A stretch of 64,000 nucleotides of DNA from Octopus bimaculoides (taxonomy: Eukaryota). Shown in pieces: positions 2,050 through 58,573 of the stretch. Under the pieces are notes generated by a model, which was not told the DNA's origin, did not search any database, and saw only the letters and a list, made by a program, of their open reading frames with translations. The position numbers and the translations under genes are program-made. The stretch covers positions 89,317,758-89,381,757 of the forward strand of contig NC_068987.1 in NCBI RefSeq assembly GCF_001194135.2, given 5' to 3'. Numbering within the stretch: the first letter of the stretch is position 1; every line of letters starts with the position of its first letter.

Positions 2050-3228
2050 CTATTTTATACGGATGACTTAAAACTCTACGGTAAAGAGAATAATGAGCTT
2101 GAAGGCTTATTACATACTGTGAAAGCATTCAGTGACGACATCAGGATGGAATTTGGTCTTGATAAATGTGAGATGGCCACTTTCCAGAAAGGGAAACTGA
2201 AGACTTCAAATTCAGTTGTGTTAGCCAGAAATGAAGGTGGATAGGGTTAATATCAGAAGAAAACTGCATGGAGTTAGCTAGAGTAGATATAGACTCCTAT
2301 GTAGGTAATAGTGAAAAATGTTTATTAAAAGCTGCTTGAGTCACAGCAAGACACAGGGAAACCAAAATCCCAATCAAAGTTAAAAACCAGAAAAAGAACA
2401 GAAATTATCAGACTGGCAGAAGAAGGCATTCTGTGGTAGGTTCCCAAAGATAGTTGCAGCAAATAGTGGTAGTGAGGCATGGTTATGGTTGCAGAAAGGA
2501 AAGCTGAAAAGGGAGACAGAAAGTTTGTTAGTAGCTGCACAAGATCAAGCACTAAGGACTAATTCGATAAAAGCCAAGATAGACAAAAACCAAGTAGATT
2601 CCCAATGTAAATTATGCGGAAAGCGTTACTCATATAGTAAGTGAATGTAGCTTGCTGGCACAAAATGAATACAAGCAATCTACTGGGAGCTATGTAGAAA
2701 GCTAGGATTTGAACATATTGATAAATGGTATGAACATGAACCTAGTAAAGTATTAGAAAGTAAGAAATACAAGATGTTATGGGATTTTAACTTTCAGACT
2801 GACAGAGTAATAGAAACTAGAAGGCCTGATTTGGTAGTAGTAGATAAAGAGAATAGAAAGTGCCAGATAACTTACAGTCCCAAATGATGAGATAACAATA
2901 ATAATAAGTATAGAAAAAATAGCAAAGTACCAGGACCTAGCTATTGAATTACAGAGACTATAGAAAGTGTGGGTAACATGTATCCCAGTAGTTATAGGTG
3001 CATTGGGAACTATCCCTAAAGATCTGAACAGCTGGATAGAGGAAATAGGCATAAAACCTGGTTTAGTACAGCTGCAGAAAACAGTGTTATTAGGGACAGC
3101 TAGGATATTTAGGAGGGTTCTTGGCATCTAAGGTTACTTGTTGTAACCTGAAATTAAGATTCTTTTTTTTCCAGCAGTCTAATCTGTTAAGTGTATATGA
3201 AAATAATAACAACAACAACAACAACAAC

Positions 3229-3293
<65 letters not shown>

Positions 3294-3295
3294 GA
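2050..3295 (+). mobile_element. Degraded R4/Dong-like non-LTR retrotransposon 3' end (restriction-like endonuclease) with (AAT)n tail
   Basis: Manual translation: LWDFNFQTDRVIETRRPDLVVVDK, KYQDLAIELQRL, IPVVIGALGTIPK, LQKTVLLGTARIFRRVLGI* (stop 3129-3131); RT remnant MEFGLDKC near 2150. Confidence 0.8.
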
Positions 3296-4873
3296 TTAAT
3301 AATCATAATCTGTCCTGTTGGGGTATAGTGGCATCCTGTCAGTTGCCTGTATTTTGGTCAGGTCCCTTGTCTGGGAATAACTTCCTCCCTTCCTTCCATC
3401 TGTCTTGGATGCCCTGGGATAGGTTATACTTACTGGCCTTTCTCTTCTAAGTCTGGTGAGAGGGAGTGTTATAGATTGAGATTAAGTTCAGAAAACAATA
3501 ACGATAATAAAGAAAACAGCTGACGGAGGTGACATATAACTATCGACTGTTGATATAACCTTTTTAACAATATTATTAAAATCAAAAGATAGGTCACCTA
3601 TCACTCTATTTCTTATGTGTTAATCATTTGAGTTTAACACACATATCTAATACAGAAGTTGTGTGATATAATATAGTATCTTGTTAATCTGATCAAAGAG
3701 GAGAACCAGGTACTCTTCTAGATATTTGCAAATTTATTAGTTAAAACCAGAGGAGGTATGGTTACAGCCATGCTCTTTGCAGTTCTTCCTAGATTTATGA
3801 GATTATTGCCATTGATGGCTTTGTTTGAATTTCTGTCAGTGGCATGGGAATTTCAGAGGGTTCTATTCAGGAGAGGAAGGATTGGTTACTGTTTAGTTAA
3901 ATAGTGACACATAGAGTGGAGGATGAGATGAGGAGAGATAGGTGGGTCAGAGTAAAAGCTGTATGTTGTTTGCTAGTTTAGGTCTAATAAGATCTATTGT
4001 TGTAGTGATGGAACCAGCTAATGGACATAACAGTATGTTTATGCAATAGTCATGGATGGGCTGTAGCATGTTGGAGAATGATTATGTTCTTGTTTGGTGG
4101 AGAAAAAAAGTATAAACTTCTTCCAAGATCCACAAAGCTGTTGTTTCACTTTAGATCAACCCTGATTGAGTAGACTACGTATTACCCTACCACCCTATTT
4201 TTTTCTTATATAAATGAAAAAAAGGGCTACATTCAAGAACTTTTGCAGGATCTCCAAGACAAGTGGGAGAAAGGGAAAAATTATTCTCATATTGGCGTAT
4301 CTGGTTTGAATGCTTGCCTAAAACTGGTGTTCATTGACAATATCAAGACACTTTAATGCGATGGTTAGTCATGTGTTCTTCTTAGGTTGTTCAAAAATTT
4401 GGAAGTTTTTGTGTGTAGACATTGACCACACTCATCATCCTCATCATCATCATTTAACATCCGTTTTCCATGCTGGCATGGGTTGGAGAGTTTGACTGAA
4501 AACTGGTAAGCCGGGGAGCTGCTGGGCCAGGTTCCAATCTGATTTGGCAATGTTTCTACAGCTGGATGCTCTTCCTAATGCCAACCACTCCAAGAGTATT
4601 ATAGTGGGTGCCTTTTATGTGTCACTGGTACAGGTGTCATTGATGTGACACCGGCATCGCCCATGACTACAATATCACTTGGCTTCACAGATCTTCACAA
4701 GCACAGTGTATCATCAAAGGTCTCCATCACCTGTTACTGTCTCCATGAGGCCCATCACTCGAGTGGTGCTTTTATGTGCCACTGGCAAGGGTGCTAGTCA
4801 GATGGTGCTGGCAGAATTTCCAATTATTTAATTAACCTGCATCGTTATACAAGTATGGAAGACAAACATTAAG

Positions 4874-4917
<44 letters not shown>

Positions 4918-5425
4918 GTGATGATGATGGTGATGATGATGATGATGATGATGTACATTGAATAAATTAATGGATCAATGTTTGATAAACATAATGATTA
5001 CGAATCTTCTGTATTTAACTTGGTGGATTATAAAATCATCATCATTTAGTGTCTGTTGTTCATGCTGGCATGGGTTGGACAGTTCAACCATGGCTGGTAA
5101 GCTGGAAGGCTACACCAGACTCCAGTCTGATTTAGCATTGTTTCTACAGCTGGATGCCCTTCCTAATGCCAACCACTCCATGAGTCTGTAGTAACGCCTT
5201 GTCTCATGCGCGTGCGTAGTCATCAATATCCAAGTTTGGCGCCCTTATTCATTCTCTTTTTCTCGCCGGCCGACGAAGAGGACAGACATCCAACAGAGCT
5301 CTCTCACATGGCTGCCTATTTTCCTCTGTAAATAAATATTGTTGTGTTGATGGATCGGAATCTGCGTTACGTTGTTTCAACAGATTTAATATAGGAAAGC
5401 GGGTGTACACCTAATAGTGTATAAC

Positions 5426-5680
5426 TACTTTCCTATAATTGGTGACCCCGACGTGATGCGATTCACACAGCCCTTCTGATGTGAATCCGACATGATTCGA
5501 TTCATACGGCCCTTCTGATGTGAATCCAACGTGATTCGTTCATACAGCCCTTCTGATCTGTACAGCCAACGTGATCCTGTTCACACAGTTTTTCTTACAA
5601 ACTGGTGACCCGCCGACGTTGATTCCAACACGCAGCCAACGTGAAAAGTTCACATAACTTTCCAAAAATGGTGACTTAAT
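5426..5680 (+). repeat. Tandem array of PBS/antisense tRNA-Trp-like units (39-40 bp period, plus further TGGTGAC copies)
   Basis: Units start at 5448, 5487, 5526, 5566 (cc(g/a)ac(g/a)tgat...ccttctgat(g/c)tg); TGGTGAC recurs at 5440, 5603, 5669. Confidence 0.8.
5440..5457 (+). other. Primer-binding site complementary to tRNA-Trp 3' end (TGGTGACCCCGACGTGAT)
   Basis: Matches the reverse complement of the eukaryotic tRNA-Trp(CCA) 3' end as recalled; this PBS type is used by CsRn1-like Gypsy elements. Confidence 0.8.
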
Positions 5681-7929
5681 GCCAGTAATAGACCAACCGT
5701 TCTTTCAGTTTTTTTCACCACATTTTTTTTTCTATTTCGTCTGTTTGTCTTCGACAAACCGACTGGTGCGAGGCTAGTGTAGTGAAACTAACACCTCGAT
5801 CGCCATTAGATACAAAACTACCTATCGCCATTATACACAAAGAAGCCATCTTCCCCGCTGTTAAATATAAACAAGCGCGGGCGTAGTGGAAAACAGATTT
5901 GCCTGTCATCACGTGACTGATTATTATTCGAAGCGGAAAATCCTTTGAACTGTTCCCGCCAGAACGCAAACTGACCAATCACAGCCCTTAATAAGGTCAC
6001 GTGATAGTGTTTTTCTAATACCTATTTGGGAGCCTACCCATCAACTATAAATAGATCAAATTATACCCGGCAAATTTGTCTCGGTTCAGATCTCTTAGAG
6101 ACCTGTTCCATGTACCACACGGCAGCAGCAGCAGCAGCCAGCGTCAACACCAATTATAGGAAAGTAGTTATACACCATTAGGTGTACACCCGCTTTCCTA
6201 TATTAAATCTGTAGAAACAACGTAACGCAGATTCCGATCCATCAACACAACAATATTTATTTACAGAGGAAAATAGGCAGCCATGTGATAGAGCTCTGTT
6301 GGACATCTGTCCTCTTCGCCAGCCGGCGAGAAAAAGAGAATGAATAAGGGCGCCAAACTTGGATATTGATGACTACGCATGCGCACGAGACAAGGCGTTA
6401 CTACAAGTCTAATGGGTGCTTTTACATTCCATTGGCACAGGTGCCATTTGCGTGACACCAGTATCTGCTATGACTGTGATTTTGCTTGGCTTGATGGCTC
6501 TTCTTCTCAAGCACGACATAATCTCACCTCTGTGAGGCCCAATGCTCAAAAGATGCATTTTACGTGCCACCAGCACATGTGCCAGTTACCTGACACCAGC
6601 ATTGGCCATGAGTACTATTTCACATAGCTTGACAGGTTTTCTCAAGCACAGCATATCACCAAAGATCTTGGTCACTAGTCATTGCCTCCAAAGGCCTAAA
6701 GTTTGAAGATTATGCTTCACCACCTCATTCCATGTCTTACTGGGGTCTACCTCTACCACAGGTTCCTTCTATAGTTAGAAATCAGCACTTCTTTACACAG
6801 CTGTCCTCGTCCATATGCATCACATGACCATAACAGGGCAGTCATCTCTCATGCACACCACATCTGATGCTTCTTACACTCAACTTTTCTTTCAAGATGC
6901 TTACACTCTGTCTTGTACATTGACATTGCATATCCAGCAAAGCATACTGGCTTCATTTCTTTCAAGCCTACACATGTTCTTGGCTGACACAGCCTATTTT
7001 TCACTGCCATGTAGCATGGCTGTTTACACACAGGCATCATACAATCTGCTTTTTACTCTGAGGGAGAGGCCCTTTGTTGCCAGCAGAGGTAAGAGCTCAC
7101 TAAACTTTGCCCAGCCTAGTCTTATTCTCACAGTAATGCTCTTTGAGCATGCATCTCCACTACTCACTTGGTTACTTAGATAACGGAAGCTATCTATTAC
7201 CTCTAGCTTACTCCACTTGCAGTTGATGGGGGTTAAGCTAGAGGTAATAGATATCAATATCTATTGACATTCTGTTAAACTCAGGTCAGGCCCACAGCAG
7301 TGATAGATGAAAGTAATAATTGGTGTGTGTTACTGGACATTACAAATAATGGTTTATTGCCTTTTGTTGATTACAACATAAGCGTGTCACTTGAAAGTGA
7401 AAGAAAAGGGAGGGAAAACAATACACTGAGACAAGCAACATAGATTCTCCTCAATGGCCGAGCAGCTCTCTGGCCTGATGTTAAATTTGTCAGAAGAGTA
7501 AGTGAGAGACTACCAGAGAGGGGAAAAGCAACATGATCTGTATTAACTTGGGATATCTCTGTCCAAAGTTGAATTCACTCAAGTTTTATTACTGTTGATT
7601 TAAAAGTTCTTGAATCTTTGTCCAGATTGTTTGGCACAAAAACTTGCATAGTTCTTTCAAAGATTGCTGCTACAACCATAATAGCCAGCCAGTGCTGATT
7701 GGTTGAGCTATATTTTCATAGGTGTTAATAGCTTTTATGACAATACTATTCCTTTTATGGAAATATATTAGCTTGTGGTTCTAGACTGGGAAAATTTGAG
7801 AGCTATGGTCGAATAGGGTCTCACTGTAGATTTATCTTGGTGAAAGTACTTTCTGAACTTAGGTAGGATCATGTCGAAACAACCAGTCCTTCTCTTCAGA
7901 GCTAGGGGACACTTCAGCCTCTATCAGTG

Positions 7930-8400
7930 ACTATTGCCATTCTGCTAAACTCAGGTCAGGCCCACTGTGGAATACTCCCCCCACATCTGCGATGTTAATC
8001 CTGCAGCTGCTGCATGTACAAACATCCTTGACTGCATCCAGAAAAGTTCCAGGTGACTTGTACTTCTCTGGATGCAAATACTCTTTGGCTTCAGGTCTAA
8101 AGGCACACTTCCTCTTTACCTTTTCAACTGCTATAATAATGGCCTTTGTCCTTCAGAATTAAACAGATTCATGACACCCTCATTCAGGCATCCCCACTTA
8201 CTTCTCCTTCTTTCATCATTTGTATCATGTCCAACACCCCAGTTCCCCACTAAGCTCTGTCCTCCCTTCCTAGAATGTTGTCCCTCTGGAAATCCCTCCC
8301 CACCACTGTTCCTGTTGTTTCCACAAGAGTTGTCTTACAGAAGTTCAAGAGGAATATTAATGATATCGATCTCACCAATCTAGGAGTCACTGAGAAAGCC
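7930..8400 (+). mobile_element. CR1/Jockey-like LINE 3' fragment
   Basis: EYSPHI...LDCIQK, YNNGLCPSEL, LWKSLP...LQKFKRNIN resemble the C-terminal region of CR1/Jockey ORF2. Confidence 0.55.
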
Positions 8401-8684
8401 ATGGGTATTGCACATTTCTCCAGTAATAAAAAGTCTAATAGTGGCTGTTATTGTTGTTTAGGATCAGATCAACTTAATTGTGCAGACTCCAATCATAAAC
8501 ATCCAGTTGTTTTAGAACAATCTTGGATCATATTACCTTAAAGCATTCTTCTTTGATTACAGTGATTATTGTTTTATTTGATGGTGGTTTAACTGCTATT
8601 TTTAGCAGGGTAGTTATTTCGCCATGAAATTAAGAACAGTTTTTTTGTGAGCCTGTTTGGTCATCCGTAGTTAACATATTTTAG

Positions 8685-10957: not shown

Positions 10958-11866
10958 ATGGCAAAACTTGGATTTGCTGAAAATTTCGCTCTCAGTGGAG
11001 CAGCTGCTATTATATCCAAGACAGCCGCAGCTCCAATTGAACGAGTAAAGCTGCTGGTTCAAAATCAAGATGAAATGTTAAAGAGTGGTAGGCTGAAGGA
11101 GCCTTACAAGGGTGTAATTGACTGCACAATGAAGACCTTCAGGTCGGAGGGTATTTTACCATTCTGGCGTGGCAACTTGGCTAATTGCATCAGATATTTC
11201 CCAACCCAGGCTCTCAACTTTGCTTTCAAAGATCAGATCAAAATCATGTTTAAATCTAGTAAGGCAGATAGTTATACTTTGAAGTTTTCCAAGAATGTGG
11301 CATCAGGCGGTGTTGCTGGAGCTTTGTCCCTGTGCTTTGTCTATTCCCTCGATTATTGCCGAACCCGTTTAGCTAATGACGCCAAGAGCAGCAAAAAGGG
11401 TGGTGAGCGCCAATTCAACGGTATGGTCGACGTCTACCGCAAAACAATAGCATCTGATGGTGTTGCCGGACTTTACAGAGGTTTTGTGATCTCTTGTGTT
11501 GGAATCGTTGTCTACAGAGGGTGCTATTTCGGTTTCTATGACACCTTGAAACCAATCGTCATTGGTGACGAAGCCAGTCTCTTAATGTCCTTCGCACTTG
11601 GTTATATTGTAACCATCAGTGCTGGTCTTGTCTCTTATCCTATTGATACCATCAGGAGAAGAATGATGATGACATCCGGTGAAGCAGTCAAATATAGTGG
11701 ATCCATTGACTGTACGATGAAGATCGTCAAATCAGAAGGATTTATGTCATTGATGAAGGGTGCTGGTGCAAACATCCTCAGAGGTGTTGCCGGAGCTGGT
11801 GTCTTGTCAGGGTTTGATAAATTCAAAGAACTGTATGTGGCTTTCCGTATGGGTAGATCATCCTAA
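10958..11866 (+). CDS. AAC: Mitochondrial ADP/ATP carrier (adenine nucleotide translocase), 302 aa, intronless CDS
   Basis: [28 protein letters not shown] signature, three mitochondrial-carrier repeats; AATAAA at 12096 and 13142. Confidence 0.98.
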
Positions 11867-22418: not shown

Positions 22419-25400
22419 TGCAATATATTCTACACAATGCTTCATAGTAATTATACCATTATATATATATATATATATATATATAATGCGTGGCACCTTG
22501 GGCAAGTGTCTTCTACTATAACCTCAGGCCGACCAAAGCCTTGTGAGTGGATTTGGTAGACGGAAACTGAAAGAAGCCCATCGTATATATATATATATGT
22601 TTGTGTATCTGGGTTTGCTCCCCACAACATCGCTTCAGAACTGATGCTGGTGTGTTTACGTCCCCGTAACTTAGCAGTTCGGCAAAAGAGACCGATAGAA
22701 TAAGTACTTGGCTTACAAAGAATAAGTCCTGGGGTCGATTTGCTCGACTAAAGGTGGTGCTCCAGCATGGCTGCAGTCAAATGACTGAAACAAGTAAAAG
22801 AGTTAAAAGAGTAATACACACACACACACACAACTGTACAAATGTTTTCATAATGGACACATTATAAGCTCATGCAATAAGCAGCCATCACTTTCTTAGC
22901 AGTTGAAATTTAAATAAATGTTGCTTATTGCATGAACTTAGTATAAGTACATTATAGAAACATTTGAACAGTTGTAGTAGTAGTAGTATTAATAAATCTT
23001 TTGTTTTTGCAGCAAGAGATTGCTCAGTAGATATTTCTAATTAAGTAAATAGCTTTTTCATAATTCACATTTTTTAGAAATTATGTTGATACACATTATT
23101 CATTAAAATTGTAATATATAAAACAGACAGAGTCAACAACTATTGAAGAGGTTGCAAGAAGCAACGAAAATTATTTCTATCAATGTAGGTGATCTCCAGC
23201 CAACCAGGAGGGGCAGCAGTTCAGAGAAGGAAAAAAATTACTTGGAATGTGATATATATAAGGACAGCTGTGTAAAAAAGTGTCGTGGAAGGAGTAGACT
23301 CAGGAAGATGTGGGATGAGGTGGTGAAGCACGACCAAACATTGGGCCTTACCGAAGCAATGACTAGTGACCGAGACCTTTGGAGATATGCTGTGCTTGAG
23401 AAGACCCAACAAGCCAAGTGAGACCATAGCCCGTGGCCTATGCCAGTGGGTGTAACCAGCCCACTTATGAGTACCCCTCATTCATTGGACAATAAACTTT
23501 GCTTGCGAAGACCTGTTGAGGTAAGTGAAATCAAATCAAAATCGCTGACGTGGCTGATTGGTACTCATGCTAGTGGAACGTTAAAAGCACATCCGAGCGT
23601 GATAGTTGCCAGGGTCACAGATTGGCTCTCGTGCCGGTGGCACATAGAAAGCACCATTCGAGTGTGATTATTGCCAGCTTCACCTTACCGGCACATGTGC
23701 CAGTGGAACATGAAAAATAACATTTGAGTGTAGTTGTTGCCAGTGCTGCTGGACTGGCTCCCGTGCAAGTAGCACATAAAAAACAGCTTTTGAGCATGGT
23801 TGTTGCCAGAACTGCCTGACTGGCCCTTGTGCCGGTGGCACATAAAAAGCACCCACTACACTCTCAGAGTGGTTGGCATTAGGAAGGGCATCCAGCTGTA
23901 GAAACTTTGCCAGATCAGATTGGAGCCTGGTGCAGCCTTCTGGCTCACCAGTCCTCAGCCAAACCATCCAACCCATGTCAGCATGGAAAGCGGATGTTAA
24001 ACGATGATGATGATATATATATATATGTATATATTATCATCATCATCATCATTTAATGTACTGGTTCCACACAGGCATGCATGGAATGGTTAAGGAGGAT
24101 CCAATTAGTCTAAGGACTGTGTTAGCCTCAAATGTCTGTTTTGGAATGGTTTCTACAGCTGGATACTCTTCCTAATACCAACAAGTTTACAGAATGGACT
24201 GGACACCTTTTTTGTGACACCAGCACTTATGAAGTCACTGAATAACTCACAAGACAAGACCCCATTCACAAAGTGGTAGAGCAGTAATCGTGGCTTTGTA
24301 CCAGGTGTAGTGAAAGAGGGACAAGTATAGGGGGTCTTGCTGTGAAGGAGATACAGATATACCCCCAGTAGGAAAGTGGGGGATGGTGCAAATGAATTAT
24401 TAAGGCATGCCCTTAAGATACAAGTACATGGACAGAGAAAGAATGGGGACACAGAACCAAGGATTGGTGGGTAGGTAGATAAGGTGGATGAAGGAGTGTG
24501 TGGAGGAGACTGAAGATGCTCACAAGGCAGGGATAACTTCACAGTCACTGTCAGCCTTTTCATTGTAAAAGTTTGATAAAGATTTATTCAACTAAAAAGT
24601 ATTGAATAATCCTTACTTGATGTGAAATTGACTTTATATACTCTTTTACTTGCTTCAGTCATTTTGACTGTGGCCATGCTGGAGCACCGCCTTTAGTCGA
24701 GCAAATCGATCCCAGGACTTATTCTTCATAAGCCTAGTTAGTACATATTCTATCGGACTGTTTTGCCAAACTACTAAGTTATGGGGACGTAAACACACCA
24801 GCATCGGTTGTCAAGCGATGTTGGGGGGACAAACACAGACATATGCACACACATACATATATATTCATATACAATGGGCTTCTTTCAGTTTCTGTCTACC
24901 AAATCCACTCGCAAAGGCTTTAGTTGGCCTGAGGCTATAGAAGAAGACACTTGCCCAAGGTGTCACAGAGTGGGACTGAACCTGGAACCATGTGGTTGGT
25001 GGGCAAGCTACTTACCACACAGCCACTCCTGCACCTATATATATATATATATATATATNNNNNNNNNNNNNNNNNNNNNNNNNNNNNNNNNNNNNNNNNN
25101 NNNNNNNNNNNNNNNNNNNNNNNNNNNNNNNNNNNNNNNNNNNNNNNNNNNNNNNNNNNNNNNNNNNNNNNNNNNNNNNNNNNNNNNNNNNNNNNNNNNN
25201 NNNNNNNNNNNNNNNNNNNNNNNNNNNNNNNNNNNNNNNNNNNNNNNNNNNNNNNNNNNNNNNNNNNNNNNNNNNNNNNNNNNNNNNNNNNNNNNNNNNN
25301 NNNNNNNNNNNNNNNNNNNNNNNNNNNNNNNNNNNNNNNNNNNNNNNNNNNNNNNNNNNNNNNNNNNNNNNNNNNNNNNNNNNNNNNNNNNNNNNNNNNN

Positions 25401-26674
25401 NNNNNNNNNNNNNNNNNNNNNNNNNNNNNNNNNNNNNNNNNNNNNNNNNNNNNNNNNNNNNNNNNNNNNNNNNNNNNNNNNNNNNNNNNNNNNNNNNNNN
25501 NNNNNNNNNNNNNNNNNNNNNNNNNNNNNNNNNNNNNNNNNNNNNNNNNNNNNNNNNNNNNNNNNNNNNNNNNNNNNNNNNNNNNNNNNNNNNNNNNNNN
25601 NNNNNNNNNNNNNNNNNNNNNNNNNNNNNNNNNNNNTAGGAAGGGCATCCAGCTGTAGAAACTCTGCCAAATTAGATTGGAGCCTGATGTTGCCATCCGG
25701 TTTCACCAGTCCTCAGTCAAATCGTCCAACCCATGCTAGCATGGAAAGCGGACGTTAAACGATGATGATGATGATATATATATATATAGGCGCAGGAGTG
25801 GCTGTGTGGTAAGTAGCTTGCTTACCAACCACATGGTTCCGGGTTCAGTCCCACTGCGTGGCACCTTGGGCAAATGTCTTCTACTTTAGCCTCGGGCTGA
25901 CCTAAGCCTTGTGAGTGGATTTGGTAGACGGAAACTGAAAGAAGCCTGTCGTATATATGTATATATGGAATGCGTGTATATATATATATATATGTGTGTA
26001 TGTTCGTGTGTCTGTGTTTGTCCCCCACCATCGCTTGACAACCAGTGCTGGTGTGTTTACATCCCTGTAACATAGCGGTTCGGCAAAATGAGACCGATAG
26101 AATAAGTACTAGGCTTACAGAGAACAAGTCCTGGGGTCGATTTTCTCGACTAAAGGCGGTGCTCCAGCATGGCCACAGTCAAATGACTGAAACCAGTAAG
26201 AGAGTAAAGAGTATATATATGTTGACCTCTGTCGATTTACCAGAAATGATAAATGAGAGGACTCAATACAAATGTGGAGTGTTCTTTAACACACTATTAC
26301 TGAAAGGCTCCAATTTCTAGTAATCAGAGTTGTTCGTTTCCGATCATCAGCTGGTAAACTGAGCCTGGTTTCCTTTTGAATATCCACTGATTATTGGAAA
26401 TAAGCAACTGGAAATCAAGGCCGTTGAGTTACAATGATTTTACACACACACACACACACACACACATTCACACATTCAGTTGAAGAATTAAATGTAATGC
26501 CATAAATCCACTCTCACTTAATGTCTTATATTCTGTAACTAACTGGAATTTCAATTTGTATGGACAGCTTTCTTTGAGACAAATCTTCTATTTATGTACA
26601 CTTAGAAATACAGATATATCAAATACCATATAACATAAATTCTTGATTTATGAAAATCATCTCGGCCTCTAGAG

Positions 26675-27244: not shown

Positions 27245-29276
27245 CTCTAGAGGATGTAACATAATTACTAAATGGCAATTAAGATCAGCTCCACTTGAGA
27301 AGGGGAGACAATCTTATGAATCTAGAATTCCCCAAAGTCAAAACATCATTAAGCAAAAAAGGGTAGGTTTATTCTTTGGAGAGAAGAGGACAGACATGAA
27401 CATGGCATCTGCATGACCTTGTTTCCAGTAGCCTAAGGTCAGGTCACGTGTGGGGGGCATGTGCCATTGTGATGCACTACTGAATTCACCATTTGTTAGC
27501 ATATTCCTGAATCCTTTCAAGTGACTGTTGAGTAGATTCCCCCATCAGTCGCCATCTCCATGAGATACCTCTTCATCTGTTGTGCCCAAGTGGCATGGGG
27601 GTTGATCAACACAAGCCATCAACCCAGTCAGATTCTCAGTGAAGCGAACAGGATAGACAAAGTCTAACTTGGAAATTCAAGCAACTTCCAGGGTGAAAAA
27701 CTAGAGGTAGTCGATAGCTTCCGCTATCTGGGCGACCAAGTTAGTAGTGGGGGTGGGTGCGCTGAAAGTGTAGCTGCTAGAATAAGAATAGCCTGGGCAA
27801 AGTTTAGAGAGCTCTTACCCCTGCTGGCGACAAAGGGACTCTCACTCAGAGTAAAAGGCAGACTGTATGACGCATGCGTACGAACAACCATGCTACATGG
27901 CAGTGAAACATGGGCTGTAACTGCTGAGGACATACGTAAGCTCGCAAGGAATGAAGCCAGTATGCTCCGTTGGATGTGTAATGTCAATGTGAATACCCGT
28001 CAGAGTGTAAGNNNNNNNNNNNNNNNNNNNNNNNNNNNNNNNNNNNNNNNNNNNNNNNNNNNNNNNNNNNNNNNNNNNNNNNNNNNNNNNNNNNNNNNNN
28101 NNNNNNNNNNNNNNNNNNNNNNNNNNNNNNNNNNNNNNNNNNNNNNNNNNNNNNNNNNNNNNNNNNNNNNNNNNNNNNNNNNNNNNNNNNNNNNNNNNNN
28201 NNNNNNNNNNNNNNNNNNNNNNNNNNNNNNNNNNNNNNNNNNNNNNNNNNNNNNNNNNNNNNNNNNNNNNNNNNNNNNNNNNNNNNNNNNNNNNNNNNNN
28301 NNNNNNNNNNNNNNNNNNNNNNNNNNNNNNNNNNNNNNNNNNNNNNNNNNNNNNNNNNNNNNNNNNNNNNNNNNNNNNNNNNNNNNNNNNNNNNNNNNNN
28401 NNNNNNNNNNNNNNNNNNNNNNNNNNNNNNNNNNNNNNNNNNNNNNNNNNNNNNNNNNNNNNNNNNNNNNNNNNNNNNNNNNNNNNNNNNNNNNNNNNNN
28501 NNNNNNNNNNNNNNNNNNNNNNNNNNNNNNNNNNNNNNNNNNNNNNNNNNNNNNNNNNNNNNNNNNCACCATTTCGAGCGTGGCTGTTTTCGTGCGGGTG
28601 ACACGTAAAAGCACCCACTACACTCTTTGAGTGGTTGGCGTTAGGAAGGGCATCCAGCTGTAGAAACTCTGCCAAATCAGACTGGAGCCTGGTGTTGCCA
28701 TCCGGTTTCACCAGTCCTCAGTCAAATCGTCCAACCCATGCTAGCATGGAAAGCGGACGTTAAACGATGATGATAGCCAAACAGTTTGAACTGATATTCC
28801 CAAATCATACAAGTAACAGCATGCAGCCTGCTTTCTGAGAAGAGTGATGGGTTGGATACGAAATCCGACCAATAGTAACTCATAGTCCTGCAAAGTGTCC
28901 TGGGACCAAAGAATTTCAAGTGGATCCTAAAGGCCCTGGACGATGTCCAAATCTGACAAGTACAGAGCAGCTCTGCCCTGTCCTGCTCTATACTAACCAA
29001 ACCTGGTCTTTTCTCTCTTTTTTCTATTTTTCTTTTCTTATCTACCATCCTTTTGTTATCTTTGGTCATTTACTTGTTTCGTCATGAGACTGCGGCCATG
29101 CTGGGGCACTGCCATGAGGAATATTTTAGTCGAATGAATTGACCCCAGGACCTATGTTTTTTTTAAAGCCTGGTACTTATTCTATTGATCTGTTTCGCTG
29201 AACTGCTTAGTGATGGGAATGTAAACACACCAACACTGATTGTCAGGCAGTGGTGGGGGACAAAGACACATACACA

Positions 29277-30155
29277 CAGGGTGCTATAGGTAAATTATTG
29301 CCATTTAATATTTTTAATTTCGCACATGTGCATTGTTTTTGATTTTGTCAATTACACAGTATGGTAGGGTCAGTTGGGCACTGTCTGTGAGTAAAACTGC
29401 ACAATAATGCAATTCATTCTGCCAGAAATTTGGAAATGGCATGCTGTACTGCTTGGCATTTGCACAAGAAGCTCCAATAGCAACAGATGGTGAATACTCA
29501 ACAACCGTTGGCCTGCTGTGTCCCCAAAACATGTACTGAGAGTGATAAAAATTAAACATCCAGTCAGCCTCATGGTGTTTGGAGTGATCACTAGTGATGG
29601 TGACGTCATGCCTCCATTTATCTTCCCACATGGCCTTAGACTCAACACAGAGGCCTACAACAAGTGCCTGGAGGAGGTAGTGTCCTGGATGAAGAGGGTG
29701 GCTGCTGGAAGACCCTGTGTCTGGCAACAGGACTCTGCACCATGCCACACAAACAGGAGAACCCAATCATGGGTGTCAGACAATTTCTGCAACCACATCA
29801 CCCCTAACATCTGGCCACCTACCTCCCCTGACTGCAACCCTCTTCATTATCATGTGTCCAGCACAGTTGAGTGAGACTCAAACAAAACTCCTTGTAACAC
29901 CAAAGATGAACTGAAGGCAAGGATTATGGCAGCATTCACCAACTTAAACAAGGAGATCATCCAGAAGAGTTGCAAGAGATTCCAAAGTCGTCTGGAGGCC
30001 ATGGTTGGAGCCAATGGTGATTGTATTGAATGAATTTACTCTTTAGTATTTCAAGATATTTTAAGTAATTTTGGTAAACATATCTGCTAAAATGAGATGT
30101 CAATGTTATTTTCATTTTTGCGTAATTTAGACAACAATATATTCACTGCATCCTG
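29277..30155 (+). mobile_element. Internally deleted Tc1/mariner transposon of maT (DD37D) type
   Basis: VMVFGVITSDG...WQQDSAPCH...WPPTSPDCNPL(H): 37 residues between the second D and the mutated third D; CAGGGTG-type termini. Confidence 0.85.
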
Positions 30156-38980: not shown

Positions 38981-39841
38981 TTCCTTGAAGTACCGAACAA
39001 ATAGTTAGAGATTTATTAATGCTATGACAAAAATATCTGTATGAAGGAAATAGAACAAGATGCAGGAACCTTGAATTTATCATAAAAAGTGGACATGGAG
39101 GTTTGTCTGTATGTAAATATATGTGTATGTAGATATATCATATGTGTGTGTGTGAAAGTGCTTGTGTGCGTGCATGCGCGCACGTGTGTGTGTGTGTGTA
39201 CATGCACACATATATATACAAGTTTGGTTTCCCCCAAAAGATGGTCAGAGTAATAAAATCATTCCACAATGCTATAATGGTTTCCATGATGAAAAGTAGT
39301 TCAGTTGCTGATTATTTCCATGTAAAGATTATTTCCATGTAAAGCTCTGTAATGGTCCTTGTATTATTTGCTATCTATTTCTCAGCCTTGCTGCAAAGTG
39401 CATCTAGGAATATCGATGAAATTGTGCATATCCAATTTCGGTCAGAACCAGAACCAAAGTCAGGGAACAACTTCTGTGAGCGTTTGCATTTGCAGATGGT
39501 TGTGCTTTGATTGCACTTTCACAGAACATCTGCTAAATTCTTTGGTCAAACCATCAGCTTGAAGAAGACCGAGGTTTTGCACAAGCCAGTACCTGGCCGC
39601 CTGAACAGGATCCTATTGTCCTAAATGCTGTGCCAAAATTTTGCTACTTGGAAAGCATTCTGTCAAATAATATCTAGCCTTGTGTCTATGTTAGAAACCA
39701 TTATGCTTAAAATTTGTATAATTTCTTAAATTCCACTGTCTAGTTAATGTTAACGACCTAATTCTTGAACTACTATCATTATTTAAAAAATACCGATTTT
39801 GTCTTTAGGCGCGTTCCATAAACAAGCTGGTGAAAAAGGCG

Positions 39842-40088
39842 GGTACTACTAAAGCAGCACGGTCCCGAACGCGCAGTCGCGCTAGCTAGTCGTGAGTAGT
39901 CGATCCTAGCCCTGTCCCTAACCCTAACCCTGTCCCTAACCCTATCCCTAACCCTAACCATATCCCTAACCCGCGTTTGTAAATGAATACGTGTTTAGGG
40001 TTAGGGTTAAGGTTAGGATCGACCACTCACGACTAGCTAGCGCGGACACGCGACGGCGAGTTCGGGACCGTGCTGCTTTAGTAGTACC
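39842..40088. mobile_element. Merlin-like MITE (247 bp) containing telomeric repeats
   Basis: Perfect 29-bp TIR GGTACTACTAAAGCAGCACGGTCCCGAAC; 8-bp TSD AAAAGGCG at 39834-39841 and 40089-40096; CCCTAA tract about 39905-39972, TTAGGG tract about 39995-40016. Confidence 0.85.
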
Positions 40089-43000
40089 AAAAGGCGTAAC
40101 GCTTACATTATATTGTAATTAACGAAATAATATAGATTATATAGGGGCATAACTACAGATGTGTGTCCTTTCATTGACTTTGTTTCTTTATGACTTTCTG
40201 AAAAATGCATATTTTTTAATGAAATTTTCAACAAACATGTTTGAGATTATGTGGATTACGATTATGTCGGAAGTGTAAAAAAAAAAAAAAGATTGGGGTA
40301 GGGGTCAGAAAAATCACACACCCAGTCTTTATTTCCTCTTACGTTCAAATGAGATGTAGGAATAAACCAAACCCTTTTTGTTTCTCCATCAAAATCCGAT
40401 ATACACCATGTGAAACTGTATTAAAAAAAGAAATATTCATTTTTCATAAAGTTATAAGAAATCAAAATCGATGATGGACGGGGTACACAACTGTATTTAT
40501 ACCGATTATATTTAGCTTTAATAACGTACTTAGTTTATTAAAAACGAATCGTCGTCTTTTTTATGTTTGTTTTTGCAATNNNNNNNNNNNNNNNNNNNNN
40601 NNNNNNNNNNNNNNNNNNNNNNNNNNNNNNNNNNNNNNNNNNNNNNNNNNNNNNNNNNNNNNNNNNNNNNNNNNNNNNNNNNNNNNNNNNNNNNNNNNNN
40701 NNNNNNNNNNNNNNNNNNNNNNNNNNNNNNNNNNNNNNNNNNNNNNNNNNNNNNNNNNNNNNNNNNNNNNNNNNNNNNNNNNNNNNNNNNNNNNNNNNNN
40801 NNNNNNNNNNNNNNNNNNNNNNNNNNNNNNNNNNNNNNNNNNNNNNNNNNNNNNNNNNNNNNNNNNNNNNNNNNNNNNNNNNNNNNNNNNNNNNNNNNNN
40901 NNNNNNNNNNNNNNNNNNNNNNNNNCTTAATGCTGCCGATTTTAAGTTTTTAAAATCATCTTTGTCCTAAAGACATAAATCTGGAAATCGCCCTTGTGAA
41001 AGTATGCAATCTACATTGAAATATACATCTCTGATGTGTGCAGTTTTCATTTGAATATTAATTTGAAATGAAAATGTGAATTATTTCAATATTTAGGTCG
41101 GAATTATTATTTAAGAAATCTGTAATATTGTATTTTAATTATTGATATTTCCAATACATTGATGCGATTCCTAGCTGTAGCCACATGTAACTGTTTTATG
41201 ACCAGAAACTGGAAACTAGAACAAAAGTGTTTAAACCACAAATGGTTTTTTTAGGTTAATTTAGTAGATTTAGTTTGTTTCGCAGGTTCGATTTAACTTT
41301 TATCGAATATATTGCAACTGTTTCAGTAGTTGGTTTGCCATGAATCGAAAATTATAAAACTTTATCCTGTTAGATAAGAAGTTAATGCAAACGATTTTTA
41401 AAAAAATGAGCTCTTATGAAGCCAGCGTTATCATGAGTCTCTTGACATATTTAGTTACAATGAAGAAGAGGTGGAAAGGTTTAGCAGACATAGGAGTTAG
41501 GTGGAATCTCGACAGCTCTCAGCGAAACTCTGCCGAATATGGTATTAGATAGGGATTGATTGGCATTTAATTGAGCACTTGTTAAATAACCGTTTAAGTT
41601 TAAAATTGGAGAATCCAGTGAGGTAGATTTCTAAGCGATCGTTCGATCTGCTAGATATAACAGCTAGATTCCCCTCGATAATGTCTTAAAGTAAGAAAAG
41701 TGCGTTGAACTTATGCAGTTTAACAGCGCCATCTGGTCTTTGGATGTCTTTAGTAACATCTATTGTTGCAAATATTCAAAGTGTCTGATCTGATTGTTTC
41801 TCCCAGCATTCCTCCCTGTCTCTGAGACCCCATTAAAAGGTCATGGGCCTGTCCTTTCTCATGTGACTTAATGAAATATAAAGACTCCAGTCACGCTGCT
41901 AGAACGCGGCGTGACGAGTCATACAACTGCTCACAATCTGGGTTAACCTGAGAATTAAGAGGGAATCCAACAAGATCAATATTTCTGATATATATGGGTG
42001 ATGGTTTGAAAATATATGAGAGCCTATAAGCCTCAAAATTTTAATCTGAGAACAATTGAGAGAACTGGATTTTCACAGGACAGTAGTGATGGGCGATCTT
42101 TAGACTGAAAGATTGACTCATATAATAATACTTAGAGCATTATCTTAGTATCGCAACGAGTAAAGTATCAGATCCAACAAATTGGGGACAAAGTAGGTGT
42201 CCATTGGTTGGAATTCGTTATTTAAACCTAAGAAATAACTAGCATTCGTGATCCTTTATAAATTCTAAACCAGAATACAATACGAACAAGAACGTCATTA
42301 AATTTTCTCGTGTAACAAAAAATAATGCTTTAAATATCTATATTTAATTTTTTTAATGTATAAAATATGTAATTATATAAAATATATATTAAGCAAAGAT
42401 AATATTGTTTGATCGAATATAAAGATCAACTCTACAGCATTCGTGTATTGGTGACTAAACACGTAATCATGTTTTTCACAAAGAATATGTTGAAGTCGCG
42501 ACTGTACTGGGCGAAACAATATTGTTACATATATATATATGTGCGTGTATGTGTGAATCAGTTTTGGTTGGTTTCTTTTTTTGTTTTTTGTTTCTTTGCA
42601 TTGAGAAAATTAAATGAAGTTCATGTTTGAAGTATTATTGTATTCTGGTTTCGGTATTTCTTCTGAGTTTCTGCTCTTAACACGAGGGATCGCTTCAGTT
42701 TTCTTTGTCTGTTTTCGATGGTCACTGATCAAACAGATCTACTACTGTATGTAGGAAATGGGTTGCTCTACCGTCTCAGGTCAACTGGGTAGAGTAACCT
42801 GCTCGACGAAGTATCACTCCAGATCCTCATCTATATCGTGTTTCCTTATGGCCGAGGACCACATTTCGACATACAGAGCAGAATTACATGTATATAATAG
42901 TCTAGACACGTTGCACTCTCTACATTCATAGATTCTAGTGCGTGCCACAGTGTCAAGAGTGGGTGAAGTGGACTTATTTCTTATTCCTCTCTACGTGTTA

Positions 43001-51781: not shown

Positions 51782-52430
51782 GGGTGTTCAGGCCAAATTT
51801 GACAGTTTACGTAAAAATAAGAGAAAACACAAAATCTCATCCACAGATAAAAGTATTTTAAAAAATCAAAAAAAATATCGACTAAGTTATGGCTGAGAGA
51901 TAACAGCTTATTCAGAAGCTGCCCTCAACTTCCACCACGGCCGGTTCAGAAATCTGGTGCATGCATTTCTCACTCTGTGCCTGGGAAGATATTCAAACAC
52001 TTCCTTGATCTTGGCTACCAGCAGGCAGAGTGATTGGTGTTTTTCTCAACCATGCCCCACACATAGTAATCAATGGGATTGCAATCAGAGTAATTAGGAG
52101 GCAAGAAACAGGGGAGTGTGAAGCCTTAGAAATTCTCCAACAACCACTTCTGACTCTTTCCAGAGGTAATGCAAGGAGCCACACATATGGCCTTCCAGCA
52201 GCAACCCTCTCCAGGTCAGGGGTTGACCACAATCTCCAGCAGATGGACATAATGGTCTGAATTGAGCCTAAGACTGTGTTCAAAGATGTGGAGATGAATT
52301 CCATCGTTTGGGTACAGTTAGAACACCTGCTGTGTCCCTTCCTGCTGCCCATGGCTTCATAGTCGCTGTTGCAGCAATCTCTGTCATGTCTTTCAGCCTT
52401 TACAGTGTCCGCAGAGCATTGAGCAGCAGT
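51780..52430 (-). mobile_element. Second maT-like transposon relic
   Basis: Minus strand PPNYSDCNPIDYYVWGMVEKNTN and RVAAGRPYVW; CAGGGTG terminus at 51780. Confidence 0.7.
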
Positions 52431-53108
52431 CATCCTCATCATTTAACATCTATTTTCCATGCTGGTATGGGTTGGACAGTTTGACTGGAGCTGACAAAGC
52501 CAGGAGCTACACCTGGTTCCGTTGTCTGTTTGGGCATGATTTCTGCAGCTGGATGGCCTTCCTAATGCCAACCACTTTATAGAGTGTATTGGGTACTTTT
52601 TATGTGGCTCCAGTAGTAGCAGGGTCACCAAGTTCCTTGCAATTGGGAGTTGGAGAAGTAGAATTAAGTGGCTGTGGCTTGGTGCCAGTTGAGAGATTTA
52701 AGGTATAGAAGGTACAGATATAGGTGTCTTGCTGCAGAGTAGATTCTTGGACACCCCAGTTGGGAAATAAAGGAGAGTGATAGTGAGAGAGATGATGGTG
52801 GGGATGTTTTGGGACATGCCCTCAAGGGACATTGAGGATGGCAAAGATAGGGGAGGTGATATAGAAACTTGGGCTGGGGTGTGGGCAGGATGAAGTGACT
52901 GTAGTAAATGATGGAGAGAACTATAGGAGAGGCTTGGGGGCAGGGGTTGCAGTACATATGTAAGGACATTGAGGGTGGTAGCAAAAAAGTGAAGAGTGGA
53001 TGACAGAGAACAGTCAGATGGTAAATAACATGTCCAGAGAAATATTGCTTTCATTCATTTAAGATAATAATACTATTATTATTATTATTAATTTCAATAT
53101 TATTGTAG

Positions 53109-54233: not shown

Positions 54234-54299
54234 AAAATGGGAAAAATAAGAAACATAATACCAGTGGAGGAAATGTGACAGATGGATCTGCTGGAGAAG
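54234..54299 (+). CDS. Cassette exon C1, 66 nt (ENGKNKKHNTSGGNVTDGSAGE)
   Basis: tttatAG / GTAG, phase 1-1. Confidence 0.8.
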
Positions 54300-56224
54300 G
54301 TAGNNNNNNNNNNNNNNNNNNNNNNNNNNNNNNNNNNNNNNNNNNNNNNNNNNNNNNNNNNNNNNNNNNNNNNNNNNNNNNNNNNNNNNNNNNNNNNNNN
54401 NNNNNNNNNNNNNNNNNNNNNNNNNNNNNNNNNNNNNNNNNNNNNNNNNNNNNNNNNNNNNNNNNNNNNNNNNNNNNNNNNNNNNNNNNNNNNNNNNNNN
54501 NNNNNNNNNNNNNNNNNNNNNNNNNNNNNNNNNNNNNNNNNNNNNNNNNNNNNNNNNNNNNNNNNNNNNNNNNNNNNNNNNNNNNNNNNNNNNNNNNNNN
54601 NNNNNNNNNNNNNNNNNNNNNNNNNNNNNNNNNNNNNNNNNNNNNNNNNNNNNNNNNNNNNNNNNNNNNNNNNNNNNNNNNNNNNNNNNNNNNNNNNNNN
54701 NNNNNNNNNNNNNNNNNNNNNNNNNNNNNNNNNNNNNNNNNNNNNNNNNNNNNNNNNNNNNNNNNNNNNNNNNNNNNNNNNNNNNNNNNNNNNNNNNNNN
54801 NNNNNNNNNNNNNNNNNNNNNNNNNNNNNNNNNNNNNNNNNNNNNNCTGGGATCGATTTGCTCGACTAAAAAAGGTGGTGCTCCAGCATGGTCGCAGTCA
54901 AATGATTGAAACAAGTAAAAGAATAAAAATCCTCCCCCATTCCAGAACCAATTCTATTCCCCCTCATCTTCCTCCATCCCTCTGCTCTTTCCCCTCTCCT
55001 ATACTCAAGCCTTAACACCTCCTTTATTCCCTCATCTCTCCTAATGCCACCCCCCCGAACCACTCCTATTTCTCCCACTATCAATTACTAGTCATCTCTG
55101 TTTCCTCTATCAATCTCTCCTCACATTTTTATGAGGCTTCCCCCACCTGTCCACTCACCCACTCCAGTCCTCTGTATTCCCTTCGGCTCTGTACCTCGAG
55201 GGTGTGTCCTAATACACATCCATCACCCTCTCTATCTTTCTCTTAGCCTTTCTCTCTATCCCTGATTCTCCAACTGGGCTATCCTTGTAGATAGGTGCCT
55301 TGTAACAAGGCACCTATTACTATCCCTCTGTTATTCTTTTAACTTCTCATCAACTGGATGGAAAATGGACGTTAGATGATGGTGATGATGATTTTCTGAG
55401 AAATATCAGACTGAGAACGGTTGGTTAAATTCTGTCATGACATCATAAAGTACAAATTAAATTGAGAATTGATGAAAAAACTCACTAAAGACACCTTAGA
55501 CATTCACTTGGGGCTAAATTGTATAACGTGTTTATTTTGTATAAAGAATACAACATATTAATTCTTTTGTTACCAACCCAGCTGAAACTGGCTCTGGCTC
55601 TGTAGAACAAATGTTTTGTTTTCGTAAGTTCTGAATTAAAATCTTCCACCAAACCCTAGTCACAATTTATGTTCCTGACACTAGTTTAATGATAACAAAG
55701 TTATTTTGCTAAATTCTCTGTTATATTTAAAATTAATTGAAAGAAACACAGAGCATCTCAGCAAAAGTATGGTAACAAAAGGGTTAATAAATGAGTAATT
55801 TAACCCTTTTGATGCCAATCTGGCTGAAACCAACTCTGGCTCTGTAGTACAAATGTCTTGTTTTCATAAGTTCTGAATTAAAATCTTCCACCAAACCTTA
55901 GTCACAATTTATGTTCCTAACACTTAGCTTAATGCCAACTAAGTTATTTTTACTAAATTCTTTATTATATTTAAAATTAATTGAACGAAACACAGAGCAT
56001 CTCAACAGAAAAACAGTAATGAAAGGGTTAAGATCCACTGAAATTCTCAGCCATGCGATCTCCTTACTGCTGCTCTGGGAATATTTATCAACAAACTGTT
56101 TAGTGTGGGAAAAAACATTTATCATCATCATGTTGCTTCTACATGTGTGCCTGATTAGCACAAGCATATTTAATGCAACAGCTTCCATATTTTGCTGTTT
56201 TCTTTTGTTGTTTTTCCTTTATAG

Positions 56225-57049: not shown

Positions 57050-58573
57050 GTAAGGTTTTCTTCTCTGTCTAATTTCATATCCTTTCATATTCATAATTGC
57101 TTTTGAAAATTAACTTCATCTGATATTTGGGTCTCGGAATATATCTAATGAGTTCACAAATGGAGTTTGCTGCAGTTAAAGTGGAACAAATGATTGAATA
57201 CATAAAAAAAATCGATTTTTATTAGTTTACAGTTGTCAGAAATGAGTTTGTTGCTTGTGGGTTGAGAGTGTCAGTATTTCTGGATCCAATTGGCAATTAG
57301 TTTGCTGAAAGCTGCATATAATAACTAGACAACACCGAACAAACATGTAAACAGGATTTGTTATACCACACTTGTCATAGAAAAGATGTTCACGTGTCAT
57401 CATATATATTTAGGATCAACAAGATGAAAATAGTGTAATACAACATGCTAAAAACTGTCTTCCCAAAATTTAACACTGGGACTGGTTCTAGTTTTAACAC
57501 AATGAATAACATAATGAATGTGTGTGTGTGTGTGTGTGTGTGGTGTCATGTCTAAAAGGAGTGTGTATTCATAATGTACTCAAGAACATGCTGAATTTGG
57601 TGCTGAAAAGGACTAAATTATTTTACTAAATTCTTTGTTATATTTAAAGTAATTGAAAGAAACACAGAGCATCTTAAAATAAATACAGTAATGAAAGGGA
57701 TAAGGAAACTTCTAGAGCAATCCGGAGAAGCTGTCTTGTGAACACTAAGCCACCGATTGGGCAAAAGTTTGGCTGCACACCTGATCAAACCATTGCTGTG
57801 TCATGACATGAAATTCATAATATGGCAATGCAAGTTCACATCCTGCTACCAGTTCATCTACAATTTGTAAGAGATTGTTTTAGATTTTGTTAGCTGAATG
57901 TATTANNNNNNNNNNNNNNNNNNNNNNNNNNNNNNNNNNNNNNNNNNNNNNNNNNNNNNNNNNNNNNNNNNNNNNNNNNNNNNNNNNNNNNNNNNNNNNN
58001 NNNNNNNNNNNNNNNNNNNNNNNNNNNNNNNNNNNNNNNNNNNNNNNNNNNNNNNNNNNNNNNNNNNNNNNNNNNNNNNNNNNNNNNNNNNNNNNNNNNN
58101 NNNNNNNNNNNNNNNNNNNNNNNNNNNNNNNNNNNNNNNNNNNNNNNNNNNNNNNNNNNNNNNNNNNNNNNNNNNNNNNNNNNNNNNNNNNNNNNNNNNN
58201 NNNNNNNNNNNNNNNNNNNNNNNNNNNNNNNNNNNNNNNNNNNNNNNNNNNNNNNNNNNNNNNNNNNNNNNNNNNNNNNNNNNNNNNNNNNNNNNNNNNN
58301 NNNNNNNNNNNNNNNNNNNNNNNNNNNNNNNNNNNNNNNNNNNNNNNNNNNNNNNNNNNNNNNNNNNNNNNNNNNNNNNNNNNNNNNNNNNNNNNNNNNN
58401 NNNNNNNNNNNNNNNNNNNNNNNNNNNNNNNNNNNNNNNNNNNNNNNNNNNNNNNNNNNNNNNNNNNNNNTTTCTATTAAATATCTTTAAATATTAACAT
58501 TTGAAGCATTTGTGTCTAAATACCAGAAACATCTTTGGTATAACTATTTTCCGTCTTTTATTTTCCTTTATAG

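Follow-up and report, generated by a model that had tools for sequence, protein, structure and literature searches.

Here, we describe a 1219-bp insert at positions 5187–6405 of a 64,000-nt stretch of Octopus bimaculoides DNA (hereafter the window), taken from chromosome record CM046607.1 of the gap-rich short-read assembly GCA_001194135.2. The insert is bounded by two inverted arms that resemble long terminal repeats (LTRs) and is flanked on both sides by the tetranucleotide AGTC. A canonical LTR retrotransposon of the Gypsy, BEL/Pao, Copia or ERV type consists of two direct LTRs with TG...CA termini, a target-site duplication (TSD) of 4–6 bp, a tRNA primer-binding site (PBS) beside the 5′ LTR, a polypurine tract (PPT) next to the 3′ LTR, and gag and pol genes in between. 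The insert shares some of these features, with its LTR-type arms in inverted rather than direct orientation. Coordinates refer to the window, and features within the insert lie on the + strand unless stated otherwise.

A repeat finder places the arms at 5187–5444 (left) and 6148–6405 (right, an inverted copy of the left arm, − strand), each 258 nt long, 97% complementary and separated by 703 nt. Aligned without gaps, they are identical at 249 of 258 positions (96.5%), which confirms to the base the 258-bp inverted repeats proposed in an initial annotation of this DNA. That annotation described the differences between the arms as mostly CpG-type; this holds for five of the nine mismatches, which fall on CpG/TpG/CpA sites (5206, 5212, 5271, 5287 and 5288), and not for the other four, while seven of the nine are transitions. 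The outer termini of the insert read TGTAGTAACGCC...GGCGTTACTACA (TGTAG...CTACA), with AGTC on each side. The left arm starts with the U3 (unique 3′) terminus TGTAGTAACGCC, continues with an AATAAA at 5331–5336 and a hairpin-containing U5 (unique 5′) region, and ends with TGGTG, the first 5 nt of the PBS. The right arm mirrors this arrangement, with CACCA, the complement of PBS nucleotides 1–5, at its inner end (6148–6152) and the U3 terminus ...CGTTACTACA at its outer end. The AATAAA is followed by a GT-rich stretch. The inverted repeat stops exactly after the fifth nucleotide of the PBS, the remainder of which is absent on the right side; since each arm extends 5 nt into the PBS, both are of the 5′ type, as had been proposed. 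A blastn search revealed no other copy of the element in the window, and no direct repeat of the arm is present.

The whole unit arrived in one lineage-specific integration. The two strandless AGTC copies (5183–5186 and 6406–6409) correspond to a single AGTC at this site in the sister species O. sinensis and O. vulgaris. Deleting the element together with one AGTC in silico gives joined flanks that align without gaps across the junction to 12 paralogous copies of the host repeat in the window. The orthologous loci were located via a neighboring ADP/ATP carrier gene that is 98% identical in both species. There, the uninterrupted sequence CCATGAGTCTAATGGGTGC (CCATG-AGTC-TAATGGG) is found at 4322–4340 of the O. 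sinensis locus (L003) and at 39836–39854 of the O. vulgaris locus (L006), and in both species the empty site reads ...ACTCCATG-AGTC-TAATGGGTGC... The sister-species flanks are 87–91% identical to those of O. bimaculoides on each side, and the downstream alignment is collinear. Because the orthologous sites are uninterrupted in two species, the 1219-bp unit and the 4-bp duplication must have been gained in the O. bimaculoides lineage, and we regard this single integration as established. The initial annotation had already read the AGTC as a duplication and the element as one unit, inserted into an older RTE 3′ UTR. The target is indeed an old, CpG-depleted repeat on the − strand, of which the left part occupies 5035–5186 and the remainder continues from 6406 to ~6744. 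Elsewhere in the window, this repeat follows an identically oriented RTE-type reverse transcriptase open reading frame (ORF; 27800–28010) and terminates in a (GAT)n tail, which is consistent with it being an RTE 3′ end.

Directly after the U5-like part of the left arm, at 5440–5457, lies the 18-mer TGGTGACCCCGACGTGAT, which is complementary over 18/18 positions to the 3′ end of mature tRNA-Trp and covers the complement of the post-transcriptionally added CCA. As the window and the O. sinensis locus contain no tRNA genes and the O. vulgaris locus contains only a tRNA-Phe gene, the octopus tRNA-Trp gene is not among these loci and human tRNA-Trp was used as a proxy. The 18-mer is unique in the window, with a chance expectation of 0.01 per window even when three mismatches are allowed. 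It matches a human tRNA-Trp antisense oligonucleotide (bioRxiv 10.1101/400127) and is identical both to the PBS in the Rfam RF00467 consensus and to a PBS primer for the avian retroviruses ALV/EAV. An Rfam scan gave nothing at threshold, the only relevant match being RSV_PBS (RF00467; 16.8 versus 47 bits), driven mainly by the PBS. The start of a PBS noted in the initial annotation thus applies to the right arm, which has only the first 5 nt, and understates the left side, where the full PBS is present.

The antisense tRNA-Trp similarity runs past the PBS to approximately tRNA position 38 (5458–5480) and is repeated in tandem. Antisense tRNA-Trp 3′ halves (tRNA positions ~76 to 38) form an array at 5440–5600 with a period of ~39 bp, consisting of ~4 units that are 67–88% alike; one unit reaches tRNA position 35, and only the first 18 nt of the array are perfect. 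A second, TGG-initiated antisense segment (TGGTGACCCGCCGACGTTGATTCCAACACGCAGCC) follows at 5603–5637, and a third, truncated stub (TGGTGAC) can be read at 5669–5675. The local antisense tRNA-Trp scores are 50, 37 (the segment at 5603–5637) and 30, whereas shuffled sequences reach at most 25. Aberrant retroviral DNA forms with extra tRNA sequence are familiar from the retrovirus literature of the 1980s, in which plus-strand strong-stop DNA reads through into the tRNA primer. Here, too, antisense tRNA sequence runs on after the 18-nt PBS, as far as approximately tRNA position 38, but, unlike in those forms, the unit derived from the tRNA occurs in tandem copies and is old. The array looks like an old primer read-through, halted at the anticodon loop and subsequently amplified. 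Given the 67–88% identity of its units, it would be an inherited leader feature of the parent element, rather than a product of the final event. If the last round of replication had copied the PBS afresh from the tRNA, a perfect first PBS next to such diverged units is just what one would see.

The surroundings of the PBS are predicted to be highly structured. A palindromic hairpin just upstream of it (5390–5437) has an outer stem that is perfect over 10 bp, TATAGGAAAG/CTTTCCTATA, and includes G:U pairs when read as sense RNA. Its predicted sense-RNA folding energy is −21.3 kcal/mol in the left arm and −25.5 kcal/mol in the right arm. A predicted U5:leader stem (5343–5469), in which 5343–5374 pairs with 5449–5469, encloses both the hairpin and the PBS. 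The predicted fold of 5340–5470 has a minimum free energy of −44.7 kcal/mol (z = −5.0), and the U5:leader duplex alone reaches −28.8, compared with −17.3 ± 3.5 for shuffled sequences, only 6 of 1000 of which match it. A U5:leader stem and hairpin around the PBS is the layout of retroviral PBS regions, and in reverse transcription everything between R (the repeat region) and the PBS is U5 by definition. The initial annotation had instead divided each arm into a 196-bp TGTAG...CTACA LTR core with AATAAA and a hairpin spacer. The AATAAA is indeed present in both arms; the internal CTACA (equivalent to 5378–5382) exists only in the right arm, the left arm having CAACA, and the division into LTR and spacer is not supported, as the predicted U5:leader stem spans that stretch.

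The U5 end itself is unusual. The sequence beside the PBS, ...CCTATA(AT), ends in TA and not in CA, and an inverted stretch that resembles the U3 start more closely (GTTGTTTCTACA, 9/12, P ~0.014 in shuffles) sits 57 nt inward. There, the candidate internal LTR end GTTGTTTC(A/T)ACA (5371–5382) is the inverse of the U3 start at 9 of 12 positions in the right arm and 8 of 12 in the left. We consider this internal CTACA a weakly significant oddity that is suggestive only. We speculate that, with a TA end at the PBS and a better match inside, the normal U5 end may be a poor integrase substrate, which could be one reason why a molecule with two U3 ends was integrated.

On its inner side, the right arm adjoins (GCA)n-CAGCGTCAA-CACCA, which is neither a PBS nor a PPT. 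The longest ORF in the element encodes 87 aa, and neither gag nor pol nor any other coding ORF is present. A 614-aa chimeric query made from the long stop-free frames of the element in all six frames found no homolog among 5.8 billion proteins; exact look-ups of the internal ORF and of a junction-spanning ORF in public assemblies found neither on record; and 22–24-mers from the arms and junctions had no matches in viral and prokaryotic genome collections. Since a PPT, a direct 3′ LTR and a second R in the same orientation are all missing, this copy should, under the standard model, be unable to retrotranspose again.

Between the tRNA-derived segments and the right arm lies a unique block (5700–6147) that is not CpG-depleted and in which promoter-like motifs can be discerned by eye. 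These are two copies of TCACGTGA (an E-box; 5909–5916 and 5997–6004), an E2F-like TTCCCGCC (5953–5960), a CCAAT (5975–5979) and TATAAATA (6046–6053), followed by an ATG at 6110 that opens a short ORF, MYHT(A)6SVNT..., running into the right arm, and by (GCA)5.7 at 6122–6138. The block could be part of the parent leader or captured host promoter DNA.

The CpG content of the insert sets it apart from its surroundings. The arms have observed/expected CpG ratios of 1.11 and 1.02 and the interior one of 1.08, compared with 0.19 and 0.13 in the flanks (3187–5186 and 6406–8405) and 0.39 in the window. This contrast marks the element as a recent insert in a heavily CpG-depleted background, in which its own decay has only begun, and implies that CpGs in the old repeats here decay strongly in the germ line. 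The arms have diverged by 3.5%, about one third of the divergence of the orthologous flanks (~11%), which is consistent with arms that were identical at insertion and with an insertion after the species split.

A related arrangement was encountered in a metagenome. Upon scanning JGI (Joint Genome Institute) metagenome contigs with a 22-mer spanning the U5 end and the PBS, a single contig matched (L007; Ga0123355_10259701), which has the identical 22-nt U5/PBS junction CCTATAAT|TGGTGACCCCGACG and evidently represents eukaryotic host DNA within the metagenome. It consists of a LINE (long interspersed nuclear element) reverse transcriptase fragment, followed by the 5′ end of an LTR retrotransposon with AATAAATATTGTT, CCTATAAT and a 14/18 tRNA-Trp PBS. 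A gag-like ORF begins ~75 nt past the junction (Pfam DUF7041, E = 1.4e-25, frameshifted), and a D-T-G-S protease motif is present. Outside the 22-nt seed, only the 13-mer AATAAATATTGTT is shared with the octopus element (5 of 500 shuffles), making L007 an analogue and not the parent.

With tRNA-Trp-primed LTR retroelements, as exemplified by the RF00467 architecture and L007, the octopus element has in common a TG...CA-type terminus, a GT-rich stretch after the AATAAA and, around an 18-nt tRNA-Trp PBS, a U5 hairpin and a predicted U5:leader stem. It differs from them by lacking a direct 3′ LTR, a PPT and gag/pol, and by having a second LTR that is inverted and cut off 5 nt into the PBS. We therefore consider it established that the left arm and PBS are a genuine LTR-retroelement 5′ end. 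Because the element contains no reverse transcriptase or integrase sequence, its parent is given here as an LTR retroelement, Gypsy or other, without a superfamily label.

How did an element with two 5′-type LTRs facing each other come to be inserted? The initial annotation offered two alternatives, a cut-and-paste element derived from LTRs, as a possible snapshot of the Gypsy-to-Ginger transition, and a snap-back-type cDNA with two U3 ends inserted by integrase. We favor the latter over the former: on balance, the insert is probably an aberrant cDNA of a tRNA-Trp-primed LTR retroelement that was inserted by the integrase via two U3 ends. We prefer this explanation because a perfect PBS lies beside decayed tRNA units, because the repeat boundary falls inside the PBS, because a PPT and a direct 3′ LTR are missing, and because AGTC fits neither of the target preferences of the Ginger transposons discussed below. 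The insert would then be a dead-on-arrival by-product, most likely a malformed product of reverse transcription.

Such a product could form in a few steps. During reverse transcription, a plus-sense DNA consisting of U3-R-U5-PBS and ~700 nt of downstream sequence would be made, with its 3′ end reading ...CACCA. This end could pair over ~5 nt (CACCA:TGGTG) with the 3′ end of a second DNA of the plus-strand strong-stop type (U3-R-U5-TGGTG-3′) or, in a snap-back, with its own PBS. Mutual extension of the 3′ ends to the ends of the templates would result in a blunt linear duplex with a U3 terminus (5′-TGTAG...CTACA-3′) at both ends. The DDE integrase of the element would take these two U3 ends for a normal pair and join them across a 4-bp stagger at the AGTC in the old RTE tail. 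Following insertion in the O. bimaculoides lineage, the copy would no longer have been copied through RNA and would have decayed mostly at CpGs. In vitro, the integrase of Rous sarcoma virus efficiently carries out concerted integration of donors that have only a U3 end, from which it follows that two U3 ends suffice (PMC3579926). The octopus insert resembles that reaction in the concerted joining of two identical U3 ends to a staggered cut in the target; it differs in that both U3 ends are on one natural germ-line molecule, while two separate donors are used in the test tube.

Several points weigh against an aberrant cDNA. A parent with direct LTRs was not found in the search against 5.8 billion proteins. 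The element is known from a single locus, so that its one-off nature is an assumption and not a result. The microhomology at the joint is putative, and a snap-back hairpin needs an extra step to give a two-ended duplex. Furthermore, the U5 terminus is ambiguous, given the competing internal CTACA, and the promoter-like internal block is not accounted for by a simple leader.

Unlikely, although not negligibly so, is that the insert is one copy of a propagating family with LTR-derived terminal inverted repeats (TIRs), moved as DNA by a retroelement integrase or a Ginger-like transposase in a transition from LTRs to TIRs. Ginger1 transposons have TIRs of 40–270 bp with TGTNR ends and 4-bp TSDs, 99% of which read CCGG or CCGT/ACGG, and Bao, Kapitonov and Jurka (2010) speculated that these TIRs arose from two LTRs in opposite orientation (PMC2836005). 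The 258-bp arms, TGTAG ends and 4-bp TSD of integrase-type chemistry all fall within this description, and the internal block resembles captured promoter DNA, comparable to the gene fragments carried by TIR elements such as GingerRoot. However, the AGTC of this one insertion is neither CCGG nor CCGT. It does not fit Ginger2/TDD either, which has TIRs of 50–180 bp, a 4-bp TSD (5 bp in TDD-4/5) and an RTATAY target (PMC2836005), as the arms are longer than this and the target reads GAGTCT. In contrast to both Ginger groups, the element carries a tRNA PBS and tRNA-derived repeats and encodes no transposase. No second copy is found in the window or in 77 kb of the sister-species loci, and the perfect 18-nt PBS beside decayed tRNA-like units indicates very recent reverse transcription. 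In addition, retroviral-type integrases are not known to excise integrated DNA. We find it doubtful that the insert is a member or founder of a family that uses inverted LTRs as TIRs and is mobile as DNA through integrase-type chemistry, possibly with a captured host promoter.

Two other groups of elements invite comparison. DIRS elements are likewise retroelements with inverted terminal repeats, and a literature search for inverted LTRs with a TSD found only papers on DIRS. They have a tyrosine recombinase, no TSD and an internal complementary region (PMC7192593), whereas the octopus element has a clean 4-bp TSD, a tRNA PBS and no ORF; identity as DIRS was rejected because of the TSD. The non-autonomous TRIM/LARD LTR elements also combine a PBS with a lack of ORFs, but the octopus element has inverted LTRs and lacks a PPT.

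That the LTR and PBS likeness is coincidental, and the insert an ordinary non-autonomous cut-and-paste transposon (Ginger, Sola or another family with 4-bp TSDs), is very improbable. Long TIRs, a 4-bp TSD and the lack of ORFs do amount to an anatomy like that of miniature inverted-repeat transposable elements. Coincidence would nevertheless have to produce an 18/18 tRNA-Trp match that includes the CCA, tRNA-Trp segments that all score above the shuffle maximum, and a PBS in the correct position and orientation relative to the AATAAA and the predicted U5:leader stem, as well as a U5/PBS junction that is also present in the gag-bearing retrotransposon on L007.

An equally slim chance is left to a later inversion or deletion of a normal direct-LTR insertion, or to two separate insertions in opposite orientation. 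LTR elements are often nested or rearranged in genomes rich in repeats, but a normal insertion would show a U5 end on the right, and a simple inversion cannot make an inverted 5′ LTR with 5 nt of PBS abut the flank exactly. Two insertions should have left two TSDs. Both possibilities were rejected, as both outer ends are exact U3 termini, the 4-bp TSD is perfect and removing the insert recovers the host repeat to the base. Finally, that assembly or library construction created the structure, as a palindromic chimera or by collapsing a repeat, is strongly disfavored and barely credible, for although the assembly has many N runs and no independent assembly of the junction was retrieved, the arms differ at nine positions where artefactual palindromes would be identical, no Ns lie in or near the element, and a perfect TSD with base-exact empty sites in two species is not a product of misassembly.

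Directly upstream of the target copy, 4443–5037 comprises a second copy of the RTE-tail repeat and an (ATG)n microsatellite (4870–4953). This segment is missing from O. sinensis and O. vulgaris, in which window positions 4442 and 5038 are adjacent; since the two O. bimaculoides RTE-tail copies are only ~76% alike, it is not a recent duplication. Within the RTE-tail repeat, ~115 bp downstream of the insertion site, O. sinensis and O. bimaculoides differ by an 83-bp indel (L003 4445–4527 versus window ~6522). The ADP/ATP carrier used to locate the orthologous loci is encoded at 10958–11866 as an intronless 302-aa ORF (Mito_carr) with 98% identity in both sister species. It is also found on Logan contigs of ~1.2 kb (L002, L004 and L005), which may be transcript assemblies, and in O. 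vulgaris an annotated 323-aa isoform of the carrier spans 36 kb with an upstream exon. Further along the window are fragments of Tc1/mariner-type transposases (DDE_3-like, by eye; 29518–29874 and 51993–52442) and runs of Ns, for example at 25050–25620, 28012–28575, 40580–40930, 54290–54850 and 57900–58470.

The insert provides natural evidence from the germ line that a retroelement integrase can cleanly insert, with a 4-bp TSD, a molecule that has U3 at both ends. The empty sites of the two sister species provide a date for the insertion, and its inner breakpoint, 5 nt into the PBS, would be the record of a failure in reverse transcription. Annotation tools built around direct LTRs or short TIRs will assign such elements to the wrong class. 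A two-U3 insertion is the insertion half of the step by which an integrase-family DNA transposon could acquire its TIRs from LTRs: the locus shows that a unit with opposed LTRs can be inserted, and it is silent on excision or repeated mobility. If a family with inverted LTRs did exist, the element would be a living intermediate of the transition from LTR retrotransposon to Ginger-type transposon postulated by Bao et al., still carrying its tRNA-Trp PBS. Without further copies, the insert would be a well-documented curiosity; with them, it would make the transition from retrotransposon to transposon directly testable.

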